Shown: positions 830 to 57,152, counted from the stretch's first letter. The stretch is 64,000 nt of DNA from Scyliorhinus canicula (GCF_902713615.1 NC_052155.1:64413654-64477653), one strand, 5' to 3'. Translations and numbers: made by a program. Notes: generated by a model from the letters alone, not told the origin.

Positions 830-3800
830 GGTGGGGTGGGGAGACGGTCTTAGGGAGGGGGATGAAGCTGGAAGTGGGGGGAAGGTGAAAGTGTCGGGGG
901 TACGGAGCTGGGAATGGGGTGTTGAAGCTGGGAGTGGGGTTAAGCTGGAAGTGTGGGGATGACGCTGGGAGTGAGGGGACGAAGCTGGGAGTGGGGGATA
1001 AAGCTAGGAGTGGAGGGATGAAGCTGGGAGTGGGCGGCATGAAGCTGGAATGGGGAGATGAAGCTGGGACTGGACGGGTGAAGCAGGGAGTGGAGGGAAG
1101 TAGCTGGGAGTGGGGGGAGTTGAAGCTGGGAGTGTGGGGTTGAAGCTGGGAGTGGGGGGTTGAAGCTGGGGAGTGGTGGATGAAGTTCAGAGTGGGGGGG
1201 TAAAGCTGGGAGTGGGGGGGTAAAGCTGGGATGGGGAAATGAAACTGGGAGTGGAGGGGTGAAGCAGGGAGTGGAGGGAAGTAGCTGGGAGTGGGGGGTG
1301 TTGAAGCTCCTGTGGGGAGTTGAAGCTGGGAGTGGTGGATGAAGTTCAGTGGGGGTGAAGCTGGGAGTGGGGGGGTGAAGCTGGGAGTGGGGGGTTAAAG
1401 CTGGGTGTGGGGGGGGTTGAAGATGGGAGTGGTGGATGAAGCTGAGAGATGGTGGGGGTTGAAGCTGGGAGTGGGGGGTGAAGCAGGGAGTGGAGGGAAG
1501 TAGCTGGGAGTGGGGGGGGGGGGTTGAAGCTCGGAGTGGGGAGTTGAAGCTGGGAGTGGTGGATGAAGTTCAGAGTGGGGGTGAAGCTGGGAGTGGGGGG
1601 GGGGGGGTGAAGCTGGGAGTGGGGGGTTGAAGCTGGGTGTGGGGGGGTTGAAGCTGGGAGTGGGGGGTTGAAGATGGGAGTGGTGGATGAAGCTGAGAGA
1701 TGGTGGGGGTTGAAGCTGGGAGTGGGGGGGTGTGAAGCTGGGATGGGGAAATGAAACTGGGAGTTGAGGGCTGAAGCAGGAAGTGGAGGGAAGTAGCTGG
1801 GAGTGGGGGGTTGAAGCTCGGAGTGGGGGGTTGAAGCTGGGAGTGATGGATGAAGTTCAGAGCGGGGGTGAAGCTGGGAGTGGGGGGGGGGGTGAAGCTG
1901 GGAGTGGGGGGTTGAAGCTGGGTGTGGGGGTGAAGCTGGGAGTGGGGGGGTGAAGCTGGGAGTGGGGGGTTGAAGCTGGGTGTGGGGGGTGAAGCTGGGA
2001 GTGGTGGATGAAGCTGAGAGAGGGGGGGTTGAAGCTGGGAGTGGGGGGGGTGAAGCTGGGATGGGGAAGTGAACCTGGGAGTGGAGGGGTGAAGCAGGGA
2101 GTGGAGGGAAGTAGTTGGGAGTGGGGGTGATGAAGCTGGGAGTGGCGGGGTGAAGCTGGGAGTGGGGGATGAAGCTGGGAGTAGGGGGATGAAGCTGGGA
2201 GTGTGGGGTTGAAGCTGGGAGTGGTGGATGAAGTTCAGAGTGGGGGGGTGAAGCTGGGAGTGGGGGGGTGAAGCTGGGAGTGGGGGATGAAGCTGGGAGT
2301 AGGGGGATGAAGCTGGGAGTGGGAGGTTGAAACTGGGAGTGGTGGGATGAAGCTGGGAGTGGGGGAATGAAACTGGGAGTGGTGGGATGAAGCTGGGAGT
2401 GGCGGAATGAAACTGGGAGTGGTGGGATGAAACTGGGAGTGGTGGGATTAAGCTGGGACTGGGGGTACAAAAGTGGGAAGGGGGGATGAAACTGGGAGTG
2501 GTGGGATGAAACTGGGAGTGTGGGATGAAACTGGGATGGGGGGATGAAACTGGGAGTGGTGGGATGAAACAGGGTCCGGGGGGACAAAAGTGGGAGTGGG
2601 GGGATGAAACTGGGAGTGGTGGGATGAAACTGGGACTGGAGGGGATGAAACTGGGAGTGGGGGGTTGAAGCTGGGTGTGGGGGTGAAGCTGGGAGTGGGG
2701 GGGTGAAGCTGGGAGTGGGGGGTTGAAGCTGGGTGTGGGGGGTGAAGCTGGGAGTGGTGGATGAAGCTGAGAGAGGGGGGGTTGAAGCTGGGAGTGGGGG
2801 GGGTGAAGCTGGGATGGGGAAGTGAACCTGGGAGTGGAGGGGTGAAGCAGGGAGTGGAGGGAAGTAGTTGGGAGTGGGGGTGATGAAGCTGGGAGTGGCG
2901 GGGTGAAGCTGGGAGTGGGGGATGAAGCTGGGAGTAGGGGGATGAAGCTGGGAGTGTGGGGTTGAAGCTGGGAATGGTGGATGAAGTTCAGAGTGGGGGT
3001 GAAGCTGGGAGTGGGGGGGGGGGTGAAGCTGGGAGTGGGGGGGGTGAAGCTGGGAGTGGGGGATGAAGCTGGGAGTAGGGGGATGAAGCTGGGAGTGGGA
3101 GGTTGAAACTGGGAGTGGTGGGATGAAGCTGGGAGTGGGGGAATGAAACTGGGAGTGGTGGGATGAAGCTGGGAGTGGCGGAATGAAACTGGGAGTGGTG
3201 GGATGAAACTGGGAGTGGTGGGATTAAGCTGGGACTGGGGGTACAAAAGTGGGAAGGGGGGATGAAACTGGGAGTGGTGGGATGAAACTGGGAGTGTGGG
3301 ATGAAACTGGGATGGGGGGATGAAACTGGGAGTGGTGGGATGAAACAGGGTCCGGGGGGACAAAAGTGGGAGTGGGGGGATGAAACTGGGAGTGGTGGGA
3401 TGAAACTGGGACTGGAGGGGATGAAACTGGGAGTGGGGGGATGAAACTGGGTGTGGGGGGGATGAAACTGGGAGTGGGAGATGAAACTGGGAGTGGGAGA
3501 TGAAACTGGGAGTGGGGGGATGAAACTGGGAGTGGGGGAGATGAAACTGGGAGTGGGGGGATGAAACTGGGAGTGGGAGATGAAACTGGGAGTGGGGGGA
3601 TGAAGCTGGGAGTGGAGGGTTGAAGCTGGGAGTGGGGGGGATGAAACTGGGAGTGGGAGATGAAACTGGGAGTGGGAGATGAAACTGGGAGTGGGAGATG
3701 AAACTGGGAGTGGGGGGATGAAACTGGGAGTGGAGGGTGGAAGCTGGGAGTGGGGGGGATGAAGCTGGGAGTGGGGGGGGTGAAGCTGGGAGTGGTGGGA

Positions 3801-9292: not shown

Positions 9293-9703
9293 TGTAGTGA
9301 TATTCAGATATCAATATACATGATCAATGTATGTAAATGTAGTATATCATTTCAACACTAGATGGCTCACAGTCTGATACTATAAGAACTAGTTTCCCAC
9401 CTTTTCTAAGTCAGATGATGCAGACGATGATGTGTTCAGAACCGTGAACAAGCAAGACATAGAATAGATGGAGTGAGAGAAGTTAGAACTAGTGTGTTAT
9501 AATAGTTTATAGTTATATAGTTATCTGTATTGTACTTTAATTCTTTATTGTTAGTTTAGTATTGAGTAAAACGACTCACAGTTTATTATTTTATTACTCA
9601 TTAAATAGTTAATCTTTCAACAAGAAGGCTATTGGTCATTTTATCATCCTGGTGGATTCAATAGTATATATATTTTAGATAAGTAATTATTTAAAATATA
9701 ACA
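9293..9703 (+). repeat. 5' LTR of Gypsy element
   Basis: Direct repeat of 15102-15516, followed by the TGG PBS. Confidence 0.95.
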
Positions 9704-12933: not shown

Positions 12934-13284
12934 GTGCAGCACGGTAGCATGGTGGTTAGCATAAATGCTTCACAGCTCCAGGGTCCCAGGTTCGATTCCC
13001 GGCTGGGTCACTGTCTGTGTGGAGTCTGCACGTCCTCCCCGTGTGTGCGTGGGTTTCCTCCGGGTGCTCCGGTTTCCTCCCACAGTCCAAAGATGTGCGG
13101 GTTAGGTGGATTGGCCATGCTAAATTGCCCGTAGTGTCCTAAAAAGTAAGGTTAAGGGGGGGGTTGTTGGGTTACGGGTATAGGGTGGATACGTGGGTTT
13201 GAGTAGGATGATCATTGCTCGGCACAACATCGAGGGCTGAAGGGCCTGTTCTGTACTGTACTGTTCTATGTTCTATGTTCTATG
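12934..13284 (+). mobile_element. Full-length V-SINE (HE1-like) inserted into Gypsy pol
   Basis: GCAGCACGGTAGCATGGTGGTTAGC...GGTTCGATTCCC...(TTCTATG)3; removing it restores ...IVIPQSM|CSELLSRLHEGH. Confidence 0.93.
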
Positions 13285-15101: not shown

Positions 15102-15516
15102 TGTTGTGATATTCAAATATCAATATACATAATCAATGTATGTAAATGTAGTACAGTCATTTCAACACTAGATGGCTCACAGTCAGATACTATAAGAACT
15201 GGTTTTCCACCTTTTCTAAGTCAGATGATGCAGATGATGATGTGATTCAGAACAGTGAACAAGCAAGACTAGAATAGCTAGAGTGAGAGAAGTTGGAACT
15301 AGTTTGATATAATAGTGTATAGTTATATAGTTATCTGTATTGTACTTTAATTCTTTATTGTTAGTTTAGTATCGAGTAAAAGGCCTCACAGTTTATTATG
15401 TTATTACTCATTAAATAGTTCATCTTTCAACAAGAAGACTATTGGTCATTTTATCATCCTGGTGGATTCAAGAGTAACATATATATTTCAGATAAGTCAT
15501 TATTTAAAATATAACA
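15102..15516 (+). repeat. 3' LTR of Gypsy element
   Basis: Direct repeat of 9293-9703, preceded by the PPT. Confidence 0.95.
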
Positions 15517-17935: not shown

Positions 17936-18159
17936 ACGTCCGTTGAGTGCCTTCCATTGGTATGCCTCCAGCCACCAGCCTTCTCACCATCACAATTAAC
18001 ATCGGGCGCGATTCTCCCAAAAATGACGGTGTATCATTTTAGGGAGGAATCGCGGGGTGATTTGCACCAGGTGTATGGGGGTGATCCAGACATTATTCAC
18101 TCACACTTAGTGCAAACAAGAGCTCACAGGTGAAACACGCCAAGCCTGAGTCCCCAGGC

Positions 18160-18434
18160 AGTTTCGATTCCCGGATTGGGTCACTGTGTGTGTAGAGTCT
18201 GCATGTTCTCCCTGTGTCTGCGTGGGTTTCTTCCGGGTGCTCCGGTTTCCTCCCACAGTCCAAAGATGTGCAGGTTAGGTGGATTGGCGATGCAAAATTG
18301 CCCTTAGTGTCCAAAAAGGTTAGGTGGGGTGATGGTTACTGGGTGGAGGCGTGGGCTTAAGTGGGTTGCTCTTTCCAAGGGCCGGCACAGACTCGATTGG
18401 CCGAATGGCCTACTTCTGCACTGTAAATTCTATG
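18160..18434 (+). mobile_element. 5'-truncated V-SINE, CR1-type tail
   Basis: TTCGATTCCC...V-domain...CTTCTGCACTGTAAATTCTATG. Confidence 0.85.
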
Positions 18435-24171: not shown

Positions 24172-24446
24172 TGCAAGCTCCAGGGTCCCAGGTTTGATTC
24201 CTGGCTTGGGTCACTGTCTATGTGGAGTCTGCACATTCTCCCTGTGTCTGCGTAGGTTTCCTTCGGGTGCTTCGGTTTCCTCCCACAAGTCCCGAAAGCC
24301 GTCCCGTTAGGTGTATTGGACATTCTGAATTCTCCCTCTGTGTACACGAACAGGTGGCAGAATGTGGCGACTAGGGGATTTTCACAGTAAATTCATTGCA
24401 GTGTTAATGTAAGCCTACTTGTGACAATAATAAAGATTATTATTAT
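24172..24446 (+). mobile_element. V-SINE, tail type GCCTACTTGTGACAATAATAAAG(ATT)n
   Basis: Same family as 5330-5634; 5' end truncated. Confidence 0.88.
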
Positions 24447-33519: not shown

Positions 33520-36500
33520 TTACATCAGATGGACACGATCAGCCTGTCGGGTGCCCGTGATATTCTGGTGGACCGTCGCAGTGGAGCCGGTGACGTTGGG
33601 CCGATGGTCGTCCTTGCCTCCGGGAGCGTCGGTTGTAGATGTGTCTCCATACCCCGGGCCGGTGGTGGAGACGCTGTAATCAGGGAAGGGGGGGTATATG
33701 CGCTGGGTCATGGGGGCGAGGGGGGCGCTGGGGGGAATTGGGGTTGGGGGGAGGGTGTTGATGGAAGAGGAGAGGGCCGCACGCCGGTGGGTGCCAGGTC
33801 CCGGAGCGAGACCGTATCCTGCCAACCGTCGGGATACTCCACGTACGTATACTGTGGGTTGGCGTGGAGTAACTCGACTCGCTCAACCAACGGGTCGGAC
33901 TTGTGCACCCGCACATGCTTCCGGAGCAAGATGGGCACGGGAGTGGCCAGCCAGGTCGGGAGAGGGGATTCTGAGGACGACTTCCCAGGGAAAGCAAGAA
34001 GACGTTCATGAGGTGTTTGATTAGTGGTAGTACAGAGGAGAGACCGGATTGAGTGAAGGGCGTCGGGGATGACCTCTTGCCAACGGGGGATAGGGAGATC
34101 TCTGGACCGTAGGGCCAGCAGGATGGTTTTCCAAATGGTGCCATACTCCCGCTCGACCTGACCGTTACCCCGGGGGTTATAACTGGTCATCCTGCTAGAG
34201 GCGATGCCCCTGCTGAGCAGGAACTGACGCAGTTCGTCACTCAGAAAGGAGGACCCCCGGTCGCTGTGGATGTACGCGGGGTAACCGAACGGGAGAAGAT
34301 GGATAGGAGGACCTTTATGACGGTTGTTGTGGTCATGTCGGGACAGGGAATGGCGAAAGGGAAGCGGGAGTATTCGTCAATAACACTCAAGAAATATGTG
34401 TTCCGGTTGTTGGAGGGGAGGGAACCCTTGAAGTCTGTACTGAGACGTTCAAAGGGGCGGGATGCCTTGATCAGATGCGCTCGTTCAGGGCGGTAGAAGT
34501 GCAGTTTGCACTCGGCGCAGACCTGGCAGTCCCTGGTGACGGTCCTGACTTCCTCAACGGAGTAGGGCAGTTTGCGGGTCATAATAAAGTGGTAAAAACG
34601 GGTGACCCCTGGATGGCAGAGGTCCGTGTGGAGGGAGCGGAGGCGGTCAATCTGCGCGCTGGCGCAGGTACCGCGGGACAGGGCATCAGGAGGCTCGTTG
34701 AGCTTACCAGCATGATAAAAGATATCGTAGTTATACGTGGACAACTCGATCCACCACCGCAAGATCTTGTCATTCTTGATCTTGGCCCTCTGTGCATTAT
34801 CGAACATGAAAGCCACTAACCGTTGGTCTGTGAGGAGGGTAAACCTCCTGCCGGCCAGATAGTGCCTCTAATATCGCACAGCTTCGACTATGGCCTGTGC
34901 CTCCTTTTCCACCGAGGAGTGGCGGATTTCGGAAGCGTGGAGGATTCGTGAGAAGAAGGCCACGGGTCTGCCCACTTGGTTCAGGGTGGCCGCCAGAGCT
35001 ACGTCAGATGCGTCGCTCTAGACCTGGAATTGGAGGGACTCGTCGATAGCATGCATCGTGGCCTTTGCGATATCTGCTTTTATGCGGCTAAAGACCTGGC
35101 GGGCCTCCATCGATAGAGGAAAGGAAGTGGACTGGATGAGGGGGCGGGCTTTGTCGGCGTAGTTGGGGACCCACTGGGCGTAATAGGAGAAGAAGCCCAG
35201 GCAGCGTTTGGGAGAGGGAGTTCCATCAGGGGATGCATGCGTTCAGGGCCTATCACTCCGTTACGCACTACGTAGCCGAGGATGGCTAGACGGTCGGTGC
35301 TAAACATGCACTTATCCTTATTGTAGGTTAAATTAAGGAGTTTCGCGGTTCGGAGGAATTTTTGAAGGTTGATGTCATGGTCCTGCTGGTCATGGCCGCA
35401 GATGGTGATGTTATCGAGGTACGGGAAGGTAGCCCCTAACCCATGCTTGTCGACCATTTGGTCCATCTCCCGTTGGAAGACCGAAACCCCATTTGTGACA
35501 CCAAATGGAACCCTGAGGAAGTGGTAGAGGCGCCCATCTGCCTCAAACGCGGTGTACTTGCGGTCACTCGCGCGGATGGGGAGCTGGTGGTAGGCGGACT
35601 TAAGGTCCACCGTGGAAAAGACTCGGTATTTCGCGATCCTGTTAACCAGGTCGGAAATACGGGGGAGAGGGTACGCGTCCAGCTGCATAAACCTGTTGAT
35701 GGTCTGACTGTAATCAATGACCATCCGGTTTTTCTCCCCAGTCCGAACTATCAGCACTTGGGCTCGCCAGGGACTGTTGCTGGCCTCGATAACTCCTTCC
35801 TTATGGAGCCTCTGGACCTTGGACCCGATGAAGGTCCAGTCCTGGGTACTGTATCGTCTGCTCCGAGTGCCGACAGGTTTACAATCTGGGGTGAGATTAG
35901 CAAACAAGGAAGGTGGGTCCAGTTTGAGGGACGCGAGGCTGCAGACAGTAAGGGGGGGAATAGGACTGCCGAATTGGAAGGTTAAGCTCTGCAGGTTGCA
36001 CTGGAAATCCAGGCCCAAGAGTGGCGGAGCACATAGACTGGGGAGAATGAGGAGTTTGAAGTTTTTGAAAACCCTCCCCTGGACCGTGAGGTCCGCTATG
36101 CAGCACTCGGTGATTTGGATGTAGTGCGAACCCGAGGCCAATTCGATTTTATGCTTAACTGGGTGGATGGGGAGTGCGCAGCGTCTTACTGTGTCGGGGT
36201 GGACAAAACATTCCGTGCTCCCGGAGTCCAGTAGGCATTTCGTCTTGTGTCCGCTGAGCTTGATCGTTGTCGTAGTCTTGGCGAACGAGCGTGGTCGCGA
36301 CTGGTCGAGTGTGATGGAAGCCAGTCGTGGCGAGAGTTCCAGGTCATCCTTGGTGGCAGAGTAATCGCTGGCAGGGCCTTCCATGTTGGCCCAAGATGGC
36401 AGCGCCCAGGACCCGCACGTGGAATCGGGGTCCCAAGATGGCGGCGCCCAGGACCCGCACGTGGAGCCGAGGCCCCAATATGGCGGCGCCCATGACCTGC

Positions 36501-37492: not shown

Positions 37493-38884
37493 TCCAAAAT
37501 TCTAGCTGATTAAATTGATGAACCATCAATTGGACGCGAGACTCGATGAAGATCCAAACTGTGGCTTTAATCAGCTAGTTGTTAGCCCGGTGGTCGACTA
37601 CAGAGAAAGGCTGACCGCCAGGAAATCTGGGTACTTATACCCCGCCTCGGAGGCGGGGTCTACTTGCCTCTCGACCAATTGGTGAGCAGTCACATGACTA
37701 GCCCCAGCCAATCAGACGAGAGGCACATGACCAGCCAGAGCCAATGGGAAACCAATGCTTTGCACCAATGGCAGTGCTCCCACTCATATCACCACACATA
37801 CTTTTAGTTTCCCTGTTCACTAGGGCCAAATGTGCTCTGCTTCCTTTGCTTCACCCTGATCAGTTCACATTGTCAGCAATTTGTGGACAACATTTTATTT
37901 AAACTGCAGGGTGTAAGAACCAGCCAAAGAGCTGAAATTGTTGAATATCCTTCTCCAGCAAAATCTGGTCGACTATTTGTGTCTACATTATTCCCTGGAA
38001 TTTTCTTTTCATCTGTCTGGCTTTATACTTTTACTGCTGAGAGTGTGTACTTCAAAAGGAATTAATTGTGTGAAGTGTTTTGAAACATGTGAATTTGATA
38101 AGTTGTTATTGAAATTGAAATATTATTACAGTGTCTCTGTTGGGAAGGCAGATGGGTCGTAAGTTATTTCCCAAACTGGAAAGACATTTTAATTTTACCT
38201 TCTAAGTGCTTAAATTTCCTTCTGTTCAGTGGTGCACATGAACACATGTGGCCTCAGCTTGAGATTTCTCTGTTGCTACACTTCAGAGTGGGAAGTAAGA
38301 GGAAGGTGAGAATTAAATGTTGCCCTCCCACTATGTGATAATGTGTATCAGTACTTGAGAACAATCCTCCTGTTTCCCAAGAAGTGGAATTAACAATATT
38401 ACCTCAATGAAGAAAATCATCTTGTAAGAAGTGCATTGTCGGAAAAGTCACACTTAATATTACTGGGAGGCAATGGCAGCTGTCATTAACAGAGGGGTCA
38501 AAGAAGTAATGGATAAATCACATCAAGAAGAGGTGGAATGCACTGGCTTAGCAAATAATGATGAATGAAATAAGTTTGGAAGGGAGGACCTTTTGGCTTG
38601 CATTGAATAATTATTCTCAGAGAAATATAGTTTTCCACAAATTTTGTTATTTAATTTATAAATGAACTTTTGATAATTGGTTAGGTATCTGAAAAGCCAG
38701 ATGGCCTTGTTGACCTGAATGTCAATCCACCCCAGTTCAATTATGCCTTTGATGTGCTTTGTTATAGAAGCAAATAAAAACTGTAGTTTTCTAGCAGTTA
38801 ATGGGGTCCTTACTAAAATTGATACTTGAAAATGTTCTTTTATTTTTAGACCATCAGCAAATGGTGAGAGAACTAACAAAAAGT

Positions 38885-49213: not shown

Positions 49214-52200
49214 CAGTGTCTATTTTGAACATCAGGGAATGTCCATTCGCCTGCAGCATGACCCGAATCGGCACCACATTTGGGATTGGGATGCATCATG
49301 TTGTCTTCTTCGGGTGGGGCCACATGCAAGGCCCTGGCTCAGAGCGCCCTCATAGCCTGCCCAAGGCAGCACTCTCTCCGCTGATTCTGGTGGCCTTGAT
49401 AACTGCGTGCTCTGTGCCCACATGTCTGGCAATGCTACCGGAATTCTCTCTCATCCTCTGGAGAGGTGTGGCGCTGGTCTGTGGTGACACCCAAATTTTG
49501 AGCCTGACTGTGGTAATGTACCTTTTTTTTTCGCTTTGGAGGCGGCTTGGCCATTCGGGCACTTCCCGAGGATGTCACTGAAGTCCGGTATAGTGGCCTA
49601 ACAACACTATTGACCCCATTGCGCGTGGAACCTTGATGTTCCTGCACTCTTTTCTCCCTGTTTTCGGGGGTCAGTGCTAGCTCAATGACCCATTTTAAAT
49701 CCAACGTGGACTCCACCAACAGCTTCCTTTGCTTGGCCATGTTGTTGATTCCACACACAAGCCGATCCCTCAACATTTCAGATAGGGATGTCCTGAACTC
49801 GCAGTGCTCTGCCAGTGGGCAGAGGAGAGTCAAGGAATCAGTCACTGACTCACCCAGAGTTCACACAATCATGTTGAACCGGTGCCGTTGCATGATAACT
49901 GATAGCTTTGGGTCATAATGGTTAAGACAATAGTGCAACCAACTCATCAAATAACTTGGAATCTGGAGCAGCTGGGTACATAAAGCACTTTATAATACTA
50001 AAGGCTGAGGATAAATGTCAATCAATTAATCAACCATATGGCCGTTAGGAGGGTTACCTTTTGTCCGTCTTCTCTCATGATGCCATTGGCCTGGGAGAAG
50101 TATCTTATACGCTCTGTGCACTGAGCCTAACTTCCAGGTCTGCGTCAAAGGTCTTCAGTCTCCCAAAAAGTGGCACTTCTGATACCTAATTCCACACACT
50201 GCTGCATGGCAATCTTCTGGAGCAGCTGAAGCATCCTGAAGTCATATTTAGATTTACCTTTTTCATTGTAACGTAAGTCTGCTACAGCAGCAGATGTTTT
50301 CACGTCATAGGGAGAAGCAACATGATGGTCCTGCTTGGGCCATCATGTTGATGTTTATGCTTGATCTTACCCTTCCCAGCTGTGTGAGCCTTCGCCCACT
50401 ACTGGGGAAGCTCATACCCCACATCCCCGTGGGGAGGTCAATGACAGTTTCCCCGTGGGCCTCATGGGGGTTATCACAAAGAGCTGAGGCCTGCTGGTAG
50501 GAAACCTACCCTCTGCCTTTATTAAAATGTTTTGCATGAGCTGCTGGCGCCTACCATGCCTCCACAGACAGCTCATCCACTGGGAGTGGGCAAATGTTCA
50601 GCCACTTTGCTGGTGGCTGACTGGTGCCTGGTAGGAATGAGTAACTGGGCGGGATGATCACAAGGACAGTGGAGTCAGCAGGGCACAGGAATGATTTTTC
50701 AATTTCTTTTTAATCTTTCTTTTATTTGTAATCATTGAAGAACCCTGAAGCTGTAGCAGGCTCAGTATATGCTCCTCGCAATGGGAAAATGAATCCCCAG
50801 GGGATGCGTATGTGTGCTGTGCCCTAATCCACATTTGCAAGGTACCACCTAATGTTCTTCATGCGCAATCATTGTAAACAACCAACAAAACTTTAGCACT
50901 GACCCAAACTCGCAAGCAGATTAGCTGGGTCCTGACCAGTGTTGAAGCTGCTCCCCTTGTCTTCGACAAAAAGGATTTTCATTACACTGACAAACAATAT
51001 AAAGTACTTGGTGATCTAATTGTTTAGGTATGAGGAAATGGTTAAACATTGAAAGCAATTAAAGATCAATGTGATGCCAAGTATGGCTATTATAACTGAT
51101 TAGTTAAAAATTCCAATATTTGATCGTTGCCTTAATTCATAGAAATACCAGATATTCATCATACATAATACTTTATTAATAATTAGGTACATAGTTATTT
51201 TATTCTGAAATTAAATGTTTTATTACAGTATAAATCTTTATGTGAAACATTGCCTGTGGTCACTTCAATGGGCTTCACATTGAATAGTGGTGGACCATTA
51301 AGGAGGCAAAATCCAATACATTTAACAATTTTAAAGTATGAGGTGATATTAACCCTCCTGCCTAGCATAAACTGGTCGAGTAGTTAAAATTGGCCAGAAG
51401 ATTTAACCATCATTGCCTCCTCCATTCCTTGGGTCTGGAATTTGAATCTGCTGCACTGGGAAGGCCGCAAGGTCACCCACATACAAAAAAATCACACATG
51501 AAAATTGAAGCAGCAGGAGCCCATTCAGCCCTTCAAGTCTGCTCTGCCATTCATTATGATCATGGCTGATCATCAAGTTCAATGCCCTGATCCCGCCTTC
51601 CCCTCATATCCCTTGATTCCATTAGCTCCAAGAGCTACACCTAACTCCTCCTTGAAATGACACAACATTTTGGCCTCAATACTTTTTGTGGTAGTGAATT
51701 CCACAGATTCATCACTCTCCTCACCTCACTCCCAAAAAGTTTACAACTGCTCCACAGGGCAGCAAGATAGCACAGTGGAGGGCAGCACGGTAGCACAGTG
51801 GTTAGCAATGTGTCTTCACAGCACCAGGGTCCCAGGTTCGATTCCCCGCTGGGTCACCGTCTGTGCAGAGTTTGCACGTACTCCCCGTTTCTGTGTAGGT
51901 TTCCTCCAGGTGCTCCGGTTTCCTCCCAGAATCCTAAGGCGTGCAGGTTAGGTGGATTGGACATGCTAAATTGCCCTAAGTGTCCAAAACGTTTAGGAGG
52001 AGTTATTGGGTTTCAAGAATAGGGTGGAAGTACGGCTTAAATTGGGTTGGTGGGCTGAATGGCCTCCTTCTGCACTGTATTGTGGCAAACCACGTTATTG
52101 CATTATATGTATTGTATTGTATTGTGCATGCGTGGGCTTGTCCAGGCGGGTTCCGCCTGTGGCTCCTCCCCTCGGGCTTCTGTATAAAAATGGCAAGTCT

Positions 52201-52329
52201 CTGCCTCCGGACTCAGTTAGGGTCCAGAGGCAGGAGGCTTGCTGTTTAGTGTATTAAAGCCTCAGTTACGTTTATCACTCGTCGTCTATTCTTGATGGTG
52301 TATCAATTTAATACACTAAATTTCTAAAG

Positions 52330-55300
52330 ATGGATTCTGCACTCAAGATGAACTCCTCACTCAAGCCTGATTGCTTGCAACTGGACCCGCAGTCAGCTGA
52401 CACTACAGAGACTTTTGAACACTGGCTAAGCTGCTACAAGGCCTACCTCGCAATCTTCAACGAAGACTTCACAGACCTCCAGAAGAAGAAGGTCCTCCAT
52501 GCACGGGTGAGCCCAAGAGTCTTTCACCTCATCAGGGACGCCCCCTCGTACGCGGAGGCAATAACGCTGCTAAAAGGACATTACGTGAAATCCGTTAACC
52601 AGGTATATGCTCGGCACCTCCTCGCCACGAGACACCAACGTCCTGGGGAATCACTTGCGGAATTCCTGTGTGCCTTGCGCATACTCTGCTAGAACTGTAA
52701 CTGCCGGGTGATATCGGCTTCCCAGCACGTGGATCTGCTGACCAGGGACGCCTATGTCACGGGCATGCCGCAAAATATATCCGCCAGCGGTTATTAGAAG
52801 AGGGGCCACTCGGCCTCCCAGAGACAGTACAACTCTCCAACTCACTGGAGGTGCCCTCCCAAAACATGGGGGCCTACACCTCCGACCACGCGGCACCCTC
52901 ATGGGCCTCGTAGGCGCAGCCATCAACCGACCCGGGTGCGACGCAAGCCTGCACCTCGCAGAGGCCCAAAGTGCTACTTCTGCGGCCAGAGTAATCACCC
53001 CCGACAATGCTGCCCGGCATGGAACGCGACCTGTAGCAGCTGTGGGGAGAAGGGCCACTTTGCAAAAGCCTTCCAGGCCCAATCCCCCCCCCCCACTCCT
53101 AGATCTTCTGGGCCCAGCAGTGCTTCCTGCTGCCTGTCAGGGCACCCCCAGCTGCCGCGCAGCCACCCGCCATGTGCGACCCACGGGGGCCGCCATCTTG
53201 GACGCCATCTTACACCTCACCCGCCACGTGCGACCCAGGGTGGCTGCCATCTTTGATGCCTTCTTACACCCCACCCGCCATGTGCGACCCACAGGGGCCG
53301 CCATCTTGACGCCACCTTGGGACCACTCCGCAGCGTCCCGGGAGCCCTGCTCACCCGACTGTAGGCTGGCAGCCGCCACCTCTGACCGACCTACCGACCG
53401 CCTTCTGACACTGGCCTCTGTCACACTAGACCAGTCCCAGCCGCACCACGTTGCGAAGTCCACGATCACCGTCTGGATCAATGGGCACGAGACAGCCTGC
53501 CTCTTTGACTCTGGGAGCACAGACAGCTTCATACACCCAAATATGGTAAGGCGCTGCTCCCTCCCCATCCTACCCATGACCCAGAAAATCTCCCTAGCTT
53601 CCGGATCCCACACAGTGGAAATCCGGGGGTACTGTGTCATGACCCTCACTGTGCAAGGTGTAGAGTACACCAACTTTAGGCTCTACATCCTCCCCCATCT
53701 CTGCGCTGCCCTATTACTGGGCTCGATTTCCAGTGCCACGTCCAGAGCCTTACCCTAAAGTTCAATGGACCCCTGCCCCCCTCACCATCTGTAGTCTCGT
53801 GACCCTTAAGGTTGCCCCACCCTCCCTCTTCGCAAACCTCACCTCGGACTGTAAGCCCATCGCTACGAAGCAGACGTTACAGTGCTCAGGACAGGACCTT
53901 CATCAGGTCAGAGGTCTAGCGACTCCTGCGAGAGGGGATAATTGAGGCTATTAACAGCCCCTGGAGAGCCCAAGTGGTGGTCTTCCAGACTGGGGAGAAG
54001 CACCGGATGGTCATCGATTATAGCCAGACTATCAACTGGTAAATGCAGCTCAATGCGTACCCCCTCCCCCGCATATCTGACATGGTCAATCAGATTGCAC
54101 AGTATCGTGTCATCTCTACAGTCCACTTGAAGTCTGCTTACCACCAGCTCCCTATCTGTCCAGAGGACCGCCAGTACACTGCCTTTGAGGCAGACGGCCA
54201 CCTCCGTCGCTTCCTCGGGGTTCCCTTCGGCGTCACCAACGGGGTCTCGGTCTTCCAAAGGGAAATGGACTGAATGGTTGACAAATACGGGCTGTGGGCC
54301 ATGTTCCCTTACCTAGGCAACAACACCATCTGTGGCCGTGACCTGCAGGACCATGACGAGAACCTCCGGCGCTCCCTCCACACATCGAAACTTCTGAACC
54401 TAACTTATAACAGAGAGAAATGCGTCTTTCGCACAACCCGCCTGGCCATCCTCGGTTACGTCGTGGAACACGGAGTCTTAGGGCCCGACCCCGACCGCAT
54501 GTGCCCCCCCTGGAACTCCCCCTCCCCCACTGCCCCAAGGCCCTGGAGGGATGCCTGGGATTCTTCTCTTACTATGCCCAGTGGGTCCCCAACTACGTGG
54601 ACAAGTCCCGCCCACTGATCAAGTCCACCACATTTCCCCTGATGACTGAGGCCTGACTGGCCTTCGATTGCATCAGAGCAGATATTGCCAAAGCCGCGAT
54701 GCATGCTGCGGACGAGTCCATCCCTTTCCAAGTGGAGAGCGATGCATCGGACTTTGCTCTGGCCGCTACACTCAACCAGTCGGGCAGGCCCCTGACTTTC
54801 TTCTCCCGTACCTTTCATGCATCCGAAATTCGATACTCCTCCGTCGAAAAGGAGGGCCAAGCCATAGTAGAAGCTGTGAGACATTGGAGGCATTACCTGG
54901 CCGGCAGGCGATTCACTCGCCTCACTGACCAATGTTCGGTTGCCTTCATGTTTAACAATTCACAGCGGAACAAAATCAAGAACGACAAGATTCCGAGGTG
55001 GAGGATCGAGCTCTTCCCCTACAGCTATGATATCTTGTATCGACCTGGGTAGCTCAATGAGCCCCCAGATGCCCTATTCCGCGGTACGTGTGCCAGCGCA
55101 CAAGTAGACCAACTCAGGGCCCTCCACAACGACCTCTGTCACCCGGGGTCACCCGCTTTTACCACTTTATAAAGGCTCGCAAGCTGCGCTACTCCATCGA
55201 GGAGGTCAAGTCCGTGACCAGGGACTGCCAGGTCTGCGCGGAGTGCACTTCTATCAGCCAGACAGAGCACATCTGGTAAAGGCTCCCGCCCTTTTGAATG

Positions 55301-56222
55301 CCTCAGCATGGACTTCAAAGGGCCCCTCCCCTCCACTGACCGTAATGTGTACTTCCTCAACATCGTTGATGAGTACTCCAGATTCCCCTTCGCCATCTCC
55401 TACTCGGACGTGACCTCTGCCTCCGTTATCAAGGCCCTGCACAGCCTTTTCACCCTGTTCGGGTTCCCCGCCTACATCCACAGTGATTGGGGCTCGTCCT
55501 TTATGAGCGACGAGTTGCGTCAGTTCCTGCTCAGCAAAGGCATCGCCTCCAGCAGGACAACCAGCTATAACCCCCGGCAAAACGGACAGGTGGAGAGGGA
55601 GAACGCGACGCTCTGGAAGGTCGTCCTCCTGGCTCTACGGTCAAAAAGTCTCCCAGACTCCCGCTGGCAGGAGGTCCTCCCCTATATACTCCACTCCATC
55701 CGGTCGTTTCTCTCTACGGCCACTAACGAGACTCCTCATGAGCGTATGTTTGCCTTCCCTAGGGAGTCTACCTCCAGGGTCTCGCTTTCATCCTGGCTGA
55801 CAGTCCCGGGGCCCGTCCTTCTCTGCAAGCATGCAAAGAGCCATAAAACCGACCCCCTCGTCGAGAAGGTCCTGCTGCTCCATGCAAACCCCAATACGCC
55901 TACGTGACACACCAGGACGGGCGGGGATTTGGCTCCTGAAGGCTCCCCGGAGACCATCACCACCACACCCCATCCTACATCATTGTCCCCAACCTCCGCC
56001 CACCTCCCTCACGAACTGGCTCCTGCAGGCCCACCGAGGACAAGCACCTCCAACTCCGCACATACACCGCCCCACCCCGCTTCACCGACTCAACATCTGG
56101 GTGAAAAAGAAGAAGTCAACATGCTCCCGGACCCGCAGGTCTCGACACCAGCACCCACACAACAGCCTGGATTGAGGCGGTCTCAGCGGAAGGTCAAGGC
56201 CCCTGACAGACTTGACCTTTAA
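52330..56222 (+). pseudogene. Gypsy gag-pol pseudogene of G2
   Basis: LKPDCLQLDP; knuckles CYFCGQSNH and CSSCGEKGH; protease LFDSGS; RT LKSAYHQ and YLGN; RNase H ESDASD; integrase DFKG...DEYSRF...NGQVER; many stops and frameshifts. Confidence 0.93.
53166..53322 (+). repeat. 54-bp tandem repeat x3 in the Gag-protease linker of G2
   Basis: CCCGCCA(T/C)GTGCGACCC at 53166, 53220 and 53274; each unit carries GC(C/T)GCCATCTT. Confidence 0.88.
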
Positions 56223-57152
56223 GACCACTTCACCGCCGCCGGACTTTTTTTTAAACAGGGGGTGAATGTGGTAAACCACCTTATTGTATTATATTCACTG
56301 TGCTGTATTGTACATGCCTGGGCTTGTCCAGGCTGGCTCTGCCTGTGGCTCCTCCCCTCGGGCTTCTGTATAAAAATGGCAAATCTCCGCCTCCGGACCC
56401 AGTTCGGGTCCAGAGGCAGGAGGCTTGCTGTTTAGCGTATTAAAGCCTCAGTTACGTTTATCACTCATCATCTGTTATTGATGGCGTATCATGTATGTTC
56501 TATGTTCTATGACCACTAGTTCTGAACTCCCCCACCATCGGGAAAGTTCTTTCTGGATTTACCCTGTCTAATCCTGTTAGAATTTTATAAATTTCTACGA
56601 GATCCCCTCTCACTCTTCTAAACTCCAATGGGTATTATCCTAACCTAGTCTCTCCTCATATGACAGTCTTGCCATCCCAGGAAACAGCCTCATAAACCTT
56701 CTCTGCACTTCCTCCATAGCAAGAACATCCTTCCTTCTTCAAGGACACCACAACTGCAGACAGTACTCCAGGTTGGCCTGACCAATGCCCGATACAATAG
56801 CACTAAAACATCTCCATTCCTATACTCAAATCCTCGTGCTTTGAAGACCAACATACCATTTGCCTTCTTTCCTGCCTGCTGTAGCTGCACGCTTACTTTC
56901 AACGACTGATGCACGAGGACAGCAAGGTCTCGCTGAGTATCCACCTCTCTCAATTTACATCCATTCAAATAATAATCTGCCTTCCTATTTTGCTACCAAA
57001 ATGGATAACCTCACATTTATCCACATTATACTGAATCTGACATGCAAATGCCCATGATTCAGCCTGTCTGAATCCCGCTGAAGCATCTTTGCATCCTCCT
57101 TAAAGCTTATTCTCCCATCAATCTTGGTATCATCTGCAAGTTTGGAGATTAG

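Follow-up and report, generated by a model that had tools for sequence, protein, structure and literature searches.

Self-priming is the one well-documented alternative to priming by transfer RNA (tRNA) in long terminal repeat (LTR) retroelements, and in the literature searched it was tied to the Tf1/sushi chromoviruses with their relatives of the Tcn1 type and to the plant TAR elements (Ty1/copia). Self-priming by complementarity of LTR and primer-binding site (PBS) has been established for Tf1 and Tf2 of Schizosaccharomyces pombe (Levin 1995, 1996; Lin and Levin 1997, 1998, summarised in PMC7175516, PMC4600332 and PMC5341516) and predicted for Tj1, Tcn1, the vertebrate sushi group and the plant TAR elements (PMC4600332, PMC6317226). 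The Tf1 primer is described as the first 11 nucleotides (nt) of the mRNA (PMC7175516), and Tf1 priming as requiring a U5 stem-loop beside the duplex (Lin and Levin 1998, cited in PMC7175516). In this study, we analyzed a 64,000-nt stretch of the Scyliorhinus canicula genome (GCF_902713615.1 NC_052155.1:64413654-64477653), hereafter the window, in which coordinates count from the first letter. The window contains two LTR retrotransposons of one lineage, G1 on the minus strand and G2 on the plus strand, both of which are old, inactivated Ty3/gypsy copies. The sequence after the 5' LTR of each element is complementary to its own LTR, and from sequence comparison we consider it likely that the G1/G2 lineage starts reverse transcription by Tf1-like self-priming.

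A stem between the LTR and the primer-binding-site position in eight families

The 5' LTR of G2 (52081-52305, plus strand; 225 nt, TGTGG...TATCA) is followed by a single A and then, at the PBS position, by arm 2, TTTAATACACTAAA (52307-52320). This segment is the exact 14-nt reverse complement of arm 1, TTTAGTGTATTAAA (52245-52258), the candidate self-primer, whose last six bases (52253-52258) are an ATTAAA poly(A) signal. The loop measures 48 nt (52259-52306), and an extra G-U pair between 52244 and 52321 is possible. A U5-IR-like junction hairpin, TTGATG (52292-52297)-GTG-TATCAA (52301-52306), spans the LTR end, and the gag ATG at 52330 lies 24 nt past the LTR. A sequence-only reading of the window had described this complement, with its loop, ATTAAA, A spacer, hairpin and ATG distance, and each of these was recovered with the same coordinates and sequences. 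In G1, the equivalent stem is 13 nt long: after the 281-nt 5' LTR (37796-37516, minus strand) and one A, arm 2 at the PBS position, TTTAATCAGCTAG (37514-37502), pairs with arm 1, CTAGCTGATTAAA (37578-37566), which ends in ATTAAA (37571-37566). The G1 hairpin, TTGATG-GTT-CATCAA (37529-37515), precedes arm 2, and the gag ATG is at 37492-37490.

The arms of G1 and G2 differ at four positions, and at each of them the PBS arm carries the complementary change. The LTRs cannot be aligned upstream of the arm, where their identity of 51% equals that of shuffled sequence; between the arm and the LTR end, identity is 75%. The observation that the arms had changed together in otherwise dissimilar LTRs (281 vs 225 nt) is confirmed. 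The hairpin motif TTGATG-GTN-YATCAA was found in G1 and G2 only, where chance would give 0.02 matches. Each LTR was shuffled 20,000 times, and the longest stretch complementary to the 22 nt behind the LTR reached 12 nt for G2 and, in a single shuffle, 13 nt for G1. RNA folding placed the stem as the closing helix of the minimum-energy structure in both elements.

Relatives were sought by comparing a 606-residue protease-reverse transcriptase (RT) piece of G1 with 1.84 billion representative proteins. DNA was fetched for homologues at 34-51% identity and yielded six further families, with no other shark or ray copies among them. Every fetched locus with sufficient upstream sequence carries the same stem design, so that the pairing extends to other subfamilies. 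The six relatives have perfect stems of 12-15 nt and loops of 30-57 nt: arm 1 is TACGTTATCTAG in L001 (stem 12 nt, loop 57 nt), AGTATGTCAACTAA in L002-L005, which are one element with an intact 1246-residue gag-pol in four marine metagenome assemblies (14 and 43 nt), ACTGTCGATTTG in L006 (12 and 53 nt), ATGTTCGAATAA in L008 (12 and 30 nt), ATTTGTCAAATAAA in L009 (14 and 37 nt) and TTTATGTTGATTAAA in L010 (15 and 52 nt). Arm 2 starts 1-2 nt past the LTR end in all eight families, just upstream of gag; for L001, L006 and L009 the LTR end was placed from the terminal CA only. From the end of arm 2 to the gag ATG there are 4-23 nt, the degenerate copy L010 being omitted. The bases after the LTR match their own LTR over 12-15 nt and the LTRs of other families over 0-8 nt. 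All eight families fold with the stem closing the structure (z from -4.0 to -4.85), and none of 200 shuffles was as stable. A hairpin beside the PBS arm was also seen in L003 (TTGTTG...CAACAA) and L010 (GTATTA...TAATAC).

No TGG or tRNA-type PBS was found after the 5' LTR in any of the eight families; what follows the LTR is A-TTTAATACACTAAA in G2 and A-TTTAATCAGCTAG in G1. A third LTR retrotransposon in the same window served as a control. It lies on the plus strand, with LTRs at about 9297-9703 and 15106-15516 that are about 94% identical and a polypurine tract AAAAAGGAAGGGGGA; its LTR end, ...ATATAACA, is followed by a classical primer site, TGGTACCAGCA, and no self-complement in it exceeds 6 nt. 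Selection rather than chance as the origin of the structure is supported, and more strongly than the sequence-only reading could show: the same stem occupies the same place in 8/8 families with unrelated arms and strict cognate specificity. It is on this comparison between families that the case for function is built. The contribution of G2 to it is modest: it adds a second, independent family with compensatory change in one window, not a new phenomenon.

Among the homologues, P0158 (914 residues, 58% identical to G1) carries the NCBI label of a DDE-type integrase from the metagenome-assembled genome of a member of the Rhizobiales; probably, DNA of a eukaryotic retrotransposon was assigned to a bacterial bin.

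The candidate self-primer and the poly(A) signal

A PBS position complementary to the element's own R region, together with the lack of a tRNA-type site, is the signature of self-primed reverse transcription, and we have proposed a model on this basis. The 12-15 nt of LTR-derived leader forming arm 1 would fold back onto the complementary 12-15 nt that begin 1-2 nt past the 5' LTR; in the shark elements, the AUUAAA poly(A) signal forms the exact end of the folding segment. If Tf1 is a guide, arm 1 would be cleaved at its 3' end by the RNase H of the element, and from the 3'-OH thus released a minus-strand strong-stop DNA of very short length would be primed. This DNA would correspond to the loop of 30-57 nt (the rest of R and U5) and would then transfer to the 3' R. 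In G2, the strong-stop DNA would be 48 nt long, with about 18 nt of R usable for the first transfer. No strong-stop DNA as short as this is known to us, though there are retroviral R regions of about that length. Plus-strand synthesis would copy the primer, so that a change in the arm would reach the PBS within two rounds of replication, and such copying would account for arms that match within a family yet differ completely between families. In Tf1-type priming, the PBS inherits the sequence of the primer, as Levin reportedly described in 1995.

The poly(A) signal is closely associated with arm 1. In G1, G2, L009 and L010 the arm closes with AWTAAA as its final hexamer, in L008 the hexamer overlaps the arm end, and in L001 the signal lies outside the arm, 5 nt downstream. 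In L003 and L006, no canonical poly(A) signal was present in arm or loop, and the stem is kept nonetheless. A likely second benefit of the structure is that the stem would keep the signal's 5' copy hidden. The marine metagenome relatives L002-L005, L008 and L009 have LTRs of only 107-112 nt, which still carry an AT-rich promoter box, the primer arm and TG...CA ends; in L008 and L009, they also carry a poly(A) signal. That primer and poly(A) signal are coupled hints at the way in which promoter, primer, poly(A) signal and integration ends can all fit into a minimal LTR of about 110 nt.

Transcription of the G1 family is shown by stranded RNA reads and contigs that span the LTR, the PBS and the beginning of gag. 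Internal reads of G1 are almost all from one strand; reads on the LTR (37516-37796) come from both strands and end exactly at the LTR ends, which suggests many solo or embedded G1-family LTRs within host transcripts. Most expressed copies of the family differ from G1 at 37521, in the hairpin loop, and leave the hairpin stem unchanged. RNA reads on G1 gave no sense-strand start cluster, being dominated by LTR copies within other transcripts on both strands, and the oligo-dT RNA reads on the G2 LTR (0-10 reads) were too sparse for a start cluster. One candidate initiator of G1, TCAGCC (37614-37609), was rejected, as family reads have G rather than A at 37612, a private CpG-decay change of this copy.

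A broader and more tentative reading is that a metazoan-wide, non-chromoviral Gypsy lineage, found in cnidarians, nematodes, arthropods, tunicates and elasmobranchs, evolved or retained self-priming independently of Tf1/sushi, with the primer set by the poly(A) signal and not by the first base of the RNA; we regard this as possible rather than probable. In such an internal-primer version, about 31 nt would separate the cap from the arm in the shark elements, and RNase H would free a capped primer of about 45 nt. One and the same stem would then provide the primer and shut off the 5' poly(A) site, with a strong-stop DNA of only 30-57 nt.

RNA start, sequence decay and rival explanations

Several points weigh against self-priming, and the RNA start is the foremost of them. 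In G2, the distance from the TATAAAA box (52184-52190) to the A (52214) of an initiator-like TCAGTT (52212-52217) is 30 nt, and TATA box and initiator are kept in the 3' LTR, the latter as CCAGTT. From these two motifs, the start of the G2 RNA is predicted 31 nt upstream of the arm, and the G1 TATA box, TATAAGTA (37639-37632), stands at the same distance from its arm as that of G2. With the predicted start, the first bases of the RNA may be other than the primer: the Tf1 primer is the 5' end of its mRNA, whereas the shark arm would begin about 31 nt into the RNA. A 5' extension on an internal primer should hinder plus-strand transfer. Furthermore, the junction hairpin was not evident in L001, L008 and L009, and the intact stems of the dead G1 and G2 are also compatible with neutral persistence. 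As for the relatives, those with LTRs of 107-112 nt have AT-rich boxes roughly 24-35 nt upstream of the arm, and in L003 the arm begins at the A of TCAGT, so the arm there may well be the RNA's first bases.

The sequence-only reading had also noted that the PBS arm of both elements agrees with the 5' LTR at the sole arm position where the 3' LTR differs. The observation was reproduced: between the 5' arm and its 3' LTR copy (TTTAGCGTATTAAA at 56431-56444 in G2; CAAGCTGATTAAA in G1), the difference is T against C at 52250 in G2 and T against A at 37577 in G1, and the PBS has the state of the 5' LTR in each. Its use as a sign that the PBS was templated from an LTR-derived primer is unsupported, because both LTRs are copied from one complementary DNA, are identical at integration and diverge by mutation only afterwards, so that a difference between them is uninformative on templating. 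The information of the arm is present in three copies, and the mutated one is that of the 3' LTR in 1 of 3 cases per element and in 1 of 9 for both. The G1 family reads disagree with the 5' LTR at 5/13 LTR-discordant sites (37543, 37612, 37620, 37702 and 37760). At 37577, family RNA and contig reads gave no well-supported difference from the 5' LTR base, and the G1 3' LTR base is therefore private, the PBS and 5' LTR retaining the ancestral state. At 52250 in G2, no C was present in the few RNA reads, and the evidence favours a T-to-C change in the 3' LTR; this variant is a CpG, and parallel decay of the 5' arm from CG to TG and of the PBS from CG to CA is possible. Under neutral decay, the probability of an intact stem is about 0.24 for G2 and about 0.55 for G1. 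Since intact stems are expected under such decay, the two copies alone do not show selection, which the comparison between families does.

Self-priming has to be weighed against a purely regulatory role of the stem, in which it would either mask the poly(A) signal of the 5' R in the manner of the HIV-1 poly(A) hairpin or control gag translation, and another primer would be used. AWTAAA at or across the end of arm 1 in five families (G1, G2, L008, L009 and L010) favours such a role, as does the short distance of 4-23 nt between arm 2 and the gag ATG (L010 omitted). However, the stem persists where the signal lies outside the arm (L001) or where there is no canonical one (L003 and L006), no TGG or tRNA-like PBS follows the LTR as an alternative primer site, and occlusion of a poly(A) signal does not need arm 2 to sit at the PBS position, 1-2 nt past the LTR, as it does in 8/8 families. 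We therefore regard a leader structure that is not a primer as unlikely. Slightly less probable still is a variant of self-priming in which the pairing is intermolecular or engages the arm in the 3' R, within a circularised genome or with a co-packaged second RNA. The arm is present in both R copies of the RNA, and sequence alone cannot tell which copy pairs; moreover, a start 31 nt upstream would leave an awkward 5' flap in a fold-back in cis. Against this, a local fold is suggested by the short, constant loop of 30-57 nt and, in several families, by the hairpin next to it, and the Tf1 fold-back uses the RNA's own 5' end (PMC7175516).

As a further rival, the complementarity might be neutral or due to chance, or the primer might be a tRNA or small RNA of the cell with a fortuitous likeness to the LTR; AT-rich arms (13-42% G+C) do raise the background of short matches. 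Yet shuffling reproduced the match in at most 1 of 20,000 cases per element, eight independent families have different arms that each match their own LTR only, and a host primer could not co-vary with the LTR of each family. Such an origin is very improbable. Tf1-like self-priming, in its cis fold-back form, is thus the reading that we prefer.

Elements of the window, lineage placement and comparison with known systems

G1 and G2 are genuine integrations, with 5-bp target duplications and a common GGGGTGAA polypurine tract. G2 is flanked outside both LTRs by the same 5 nt, TGTAT (left 52076-52080, right 56492-56496); its 5' LTR has 23 differences from the 3' LTR (56267-56491), corresponding to 90% identity. 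The internal region runs from the gag start at 52330 to 56266, with Pfam matches to gag-asp_proteas, RVT_1, RT_RNaseH and rve in this order in broken frames, and ends in the polypurine tract AAACAGGGGGTGAA (56253-56266) upstream of the 3' LTR. On the minus strand, G1 has the target-site duplication GTATG (37801-37797 and 33042-33038) and a 3' LTR at 33323-33043, which differs from the 5' LTR at 13 positions (95% identical) and is adjoined by the polypurine tract AAGGGGTGAA (33333-33324). Elsewhere in the window, a G-rich satellite at about 900-3800 has a 20-nt period, a GC skew of 0.5-0.8, 57-60% G+C and a higher-order spacing of about 100-280 nt. tRNA-derived short interspersed element (SINE) copies lie at 51950-52079, 12986-13084, 18159-18257 and 24189-24287; on the copy directly upstream of G2, RNA reads of both strands number in the hundreds to thousands, compared with 0-10 on the G2 LTR.

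The elements have the hallmarks of Ty3/gypsy retrotransposons, namely the Pfam order protease-RT-RNase H-integrase, TG...CA LTRs, a target-site duplication and a polypurine tract, and the best match among solved structures is the Ty3 RT (E 5.6e-28). The nearest proteins to the pol of the window elements are from catsharks (89% identity in Scyliorhinus canicula, 72% in S. torazame). No Chromo match was found at E up to 0.1 in five intact relatives, nor was a chromodomain found in the scanned parts of the integrase of G1 and of G2, which in G2 extended to ~120 codons before the end. The source names of the homologues are 17.6, opus or gypsy, never Tf2. For the model of a catshark relative, Foldseek against Swiss-Prot gave identities of 28% for opus, 27% for gypsy, 25% for 297 and 24% for 17.6, and of 19-22% for Tf2 and 11-12% for the sushi-derived RTL1. 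These identities on a modelled structure, which do not amount to a tree, weakly suggest that the lineage is closer to opus, gypsy, 297 and 17.6 than to Tf2 or RTL1. The lineage does not look Tf1/sushi-like, and we regard it as non-chromoviral Ty3/gypsy. The region of the RT catalytic motif of G1 is at 35408-35424; Y-x-D-N replaces Y-x-D-D in 17/25 aligned members of the lineage, among them P0037, the intact 1246-residue gag-pol of four marine metagenome assemblies, and the remaining 8/25 have DD (YLDD or FMDD). The stem co-occurs with either motif (YIDN in L003; DD in L006, L008 and L009).

In the literature searched, self-priming was not found described for any non-chromoviral Gypsy elements of animals, Mag-like ones included; coverage of that literature was partial and does not prove novelty. 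If self-priming holds for a separate and widespread animal Gypsy lineage, the mechanism would be older or more easily evolved than thought. Elements independent of tRNA would also escape host defences that use tRNA-derived small RNAs aimed at the PBS (PMC7472051). For annotation, a simple rule follows: finders of tRNA-based PBSs will report such elements as PBS-less.

Among known systems, the poly(A) hairpin of human immunodeficiency virus type 1 (HIV-1) places the poly(A) hexamer of R in a stem of the 5' leader, and the PBS of the virus binds tRNA-Lys3. The hexamer of R is likewise held in a 5' leader stem in G1 and G2; however, the hairpin of HIV-1 is local, whereas in G1 and G2 the poly(A) segment pairs with the PBS position itself. 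The Mag lineage (Mag, SURL and Jule) resembles the shark lineage in its small elements of 4.4-4.9 kb, single gag-pol frame, wide metazoan distribution and very short LTRs (107-281 nt in the shark lineage and its relatives). The Mag-lineage elements described in the literature searched use tRNA-Leu or tRNA-Ser primer sites (PMC3286476). In contrast, the shark lineage has no tRNA-type PBS, and the likeness is one of general architecture only. The vertebrate sushi elements share the prediction of self-priming, but they are chromoviruses related to Tf1; for Tf1/sushi-group LTR retrotransposons of fish and amphibians, this prediction was reportedly made by Butler et al. in 2001 (cited in PMC4600332 and PMC6317226).

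The closest likeness is to Tf1 and Tf2. These elements and the shark lineage alike lack a tRNA PBS and have, after the 5' LTR, a position complementary to their own R segment; the duplex is short in both (11 bp in Tf1, 12-15 bp in the shark lineage), the target duplication is 5 bp in both, and a U5 hairpin stands beside the duplex in several members of the shark lineage (G1, G2, L003 and L010), though none was evident in L001, L008 and L009. Unlike the shark lineage, which is without a chromodomain, Tf1 is a chromovirus, and only in the shark lineage does the arm end at or near the poly(A) signal. Priming is known for Tf1; in the shark lineage the pairing, its position and its covariation are observed, and cleavage, priming and the copying of the primer into the PBS are deduced. 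The class of mechanism is a known one, and its occurrence in this lineage, the tie between arm and poly(A) signal and possibly an internal primer set it apart as a variant.

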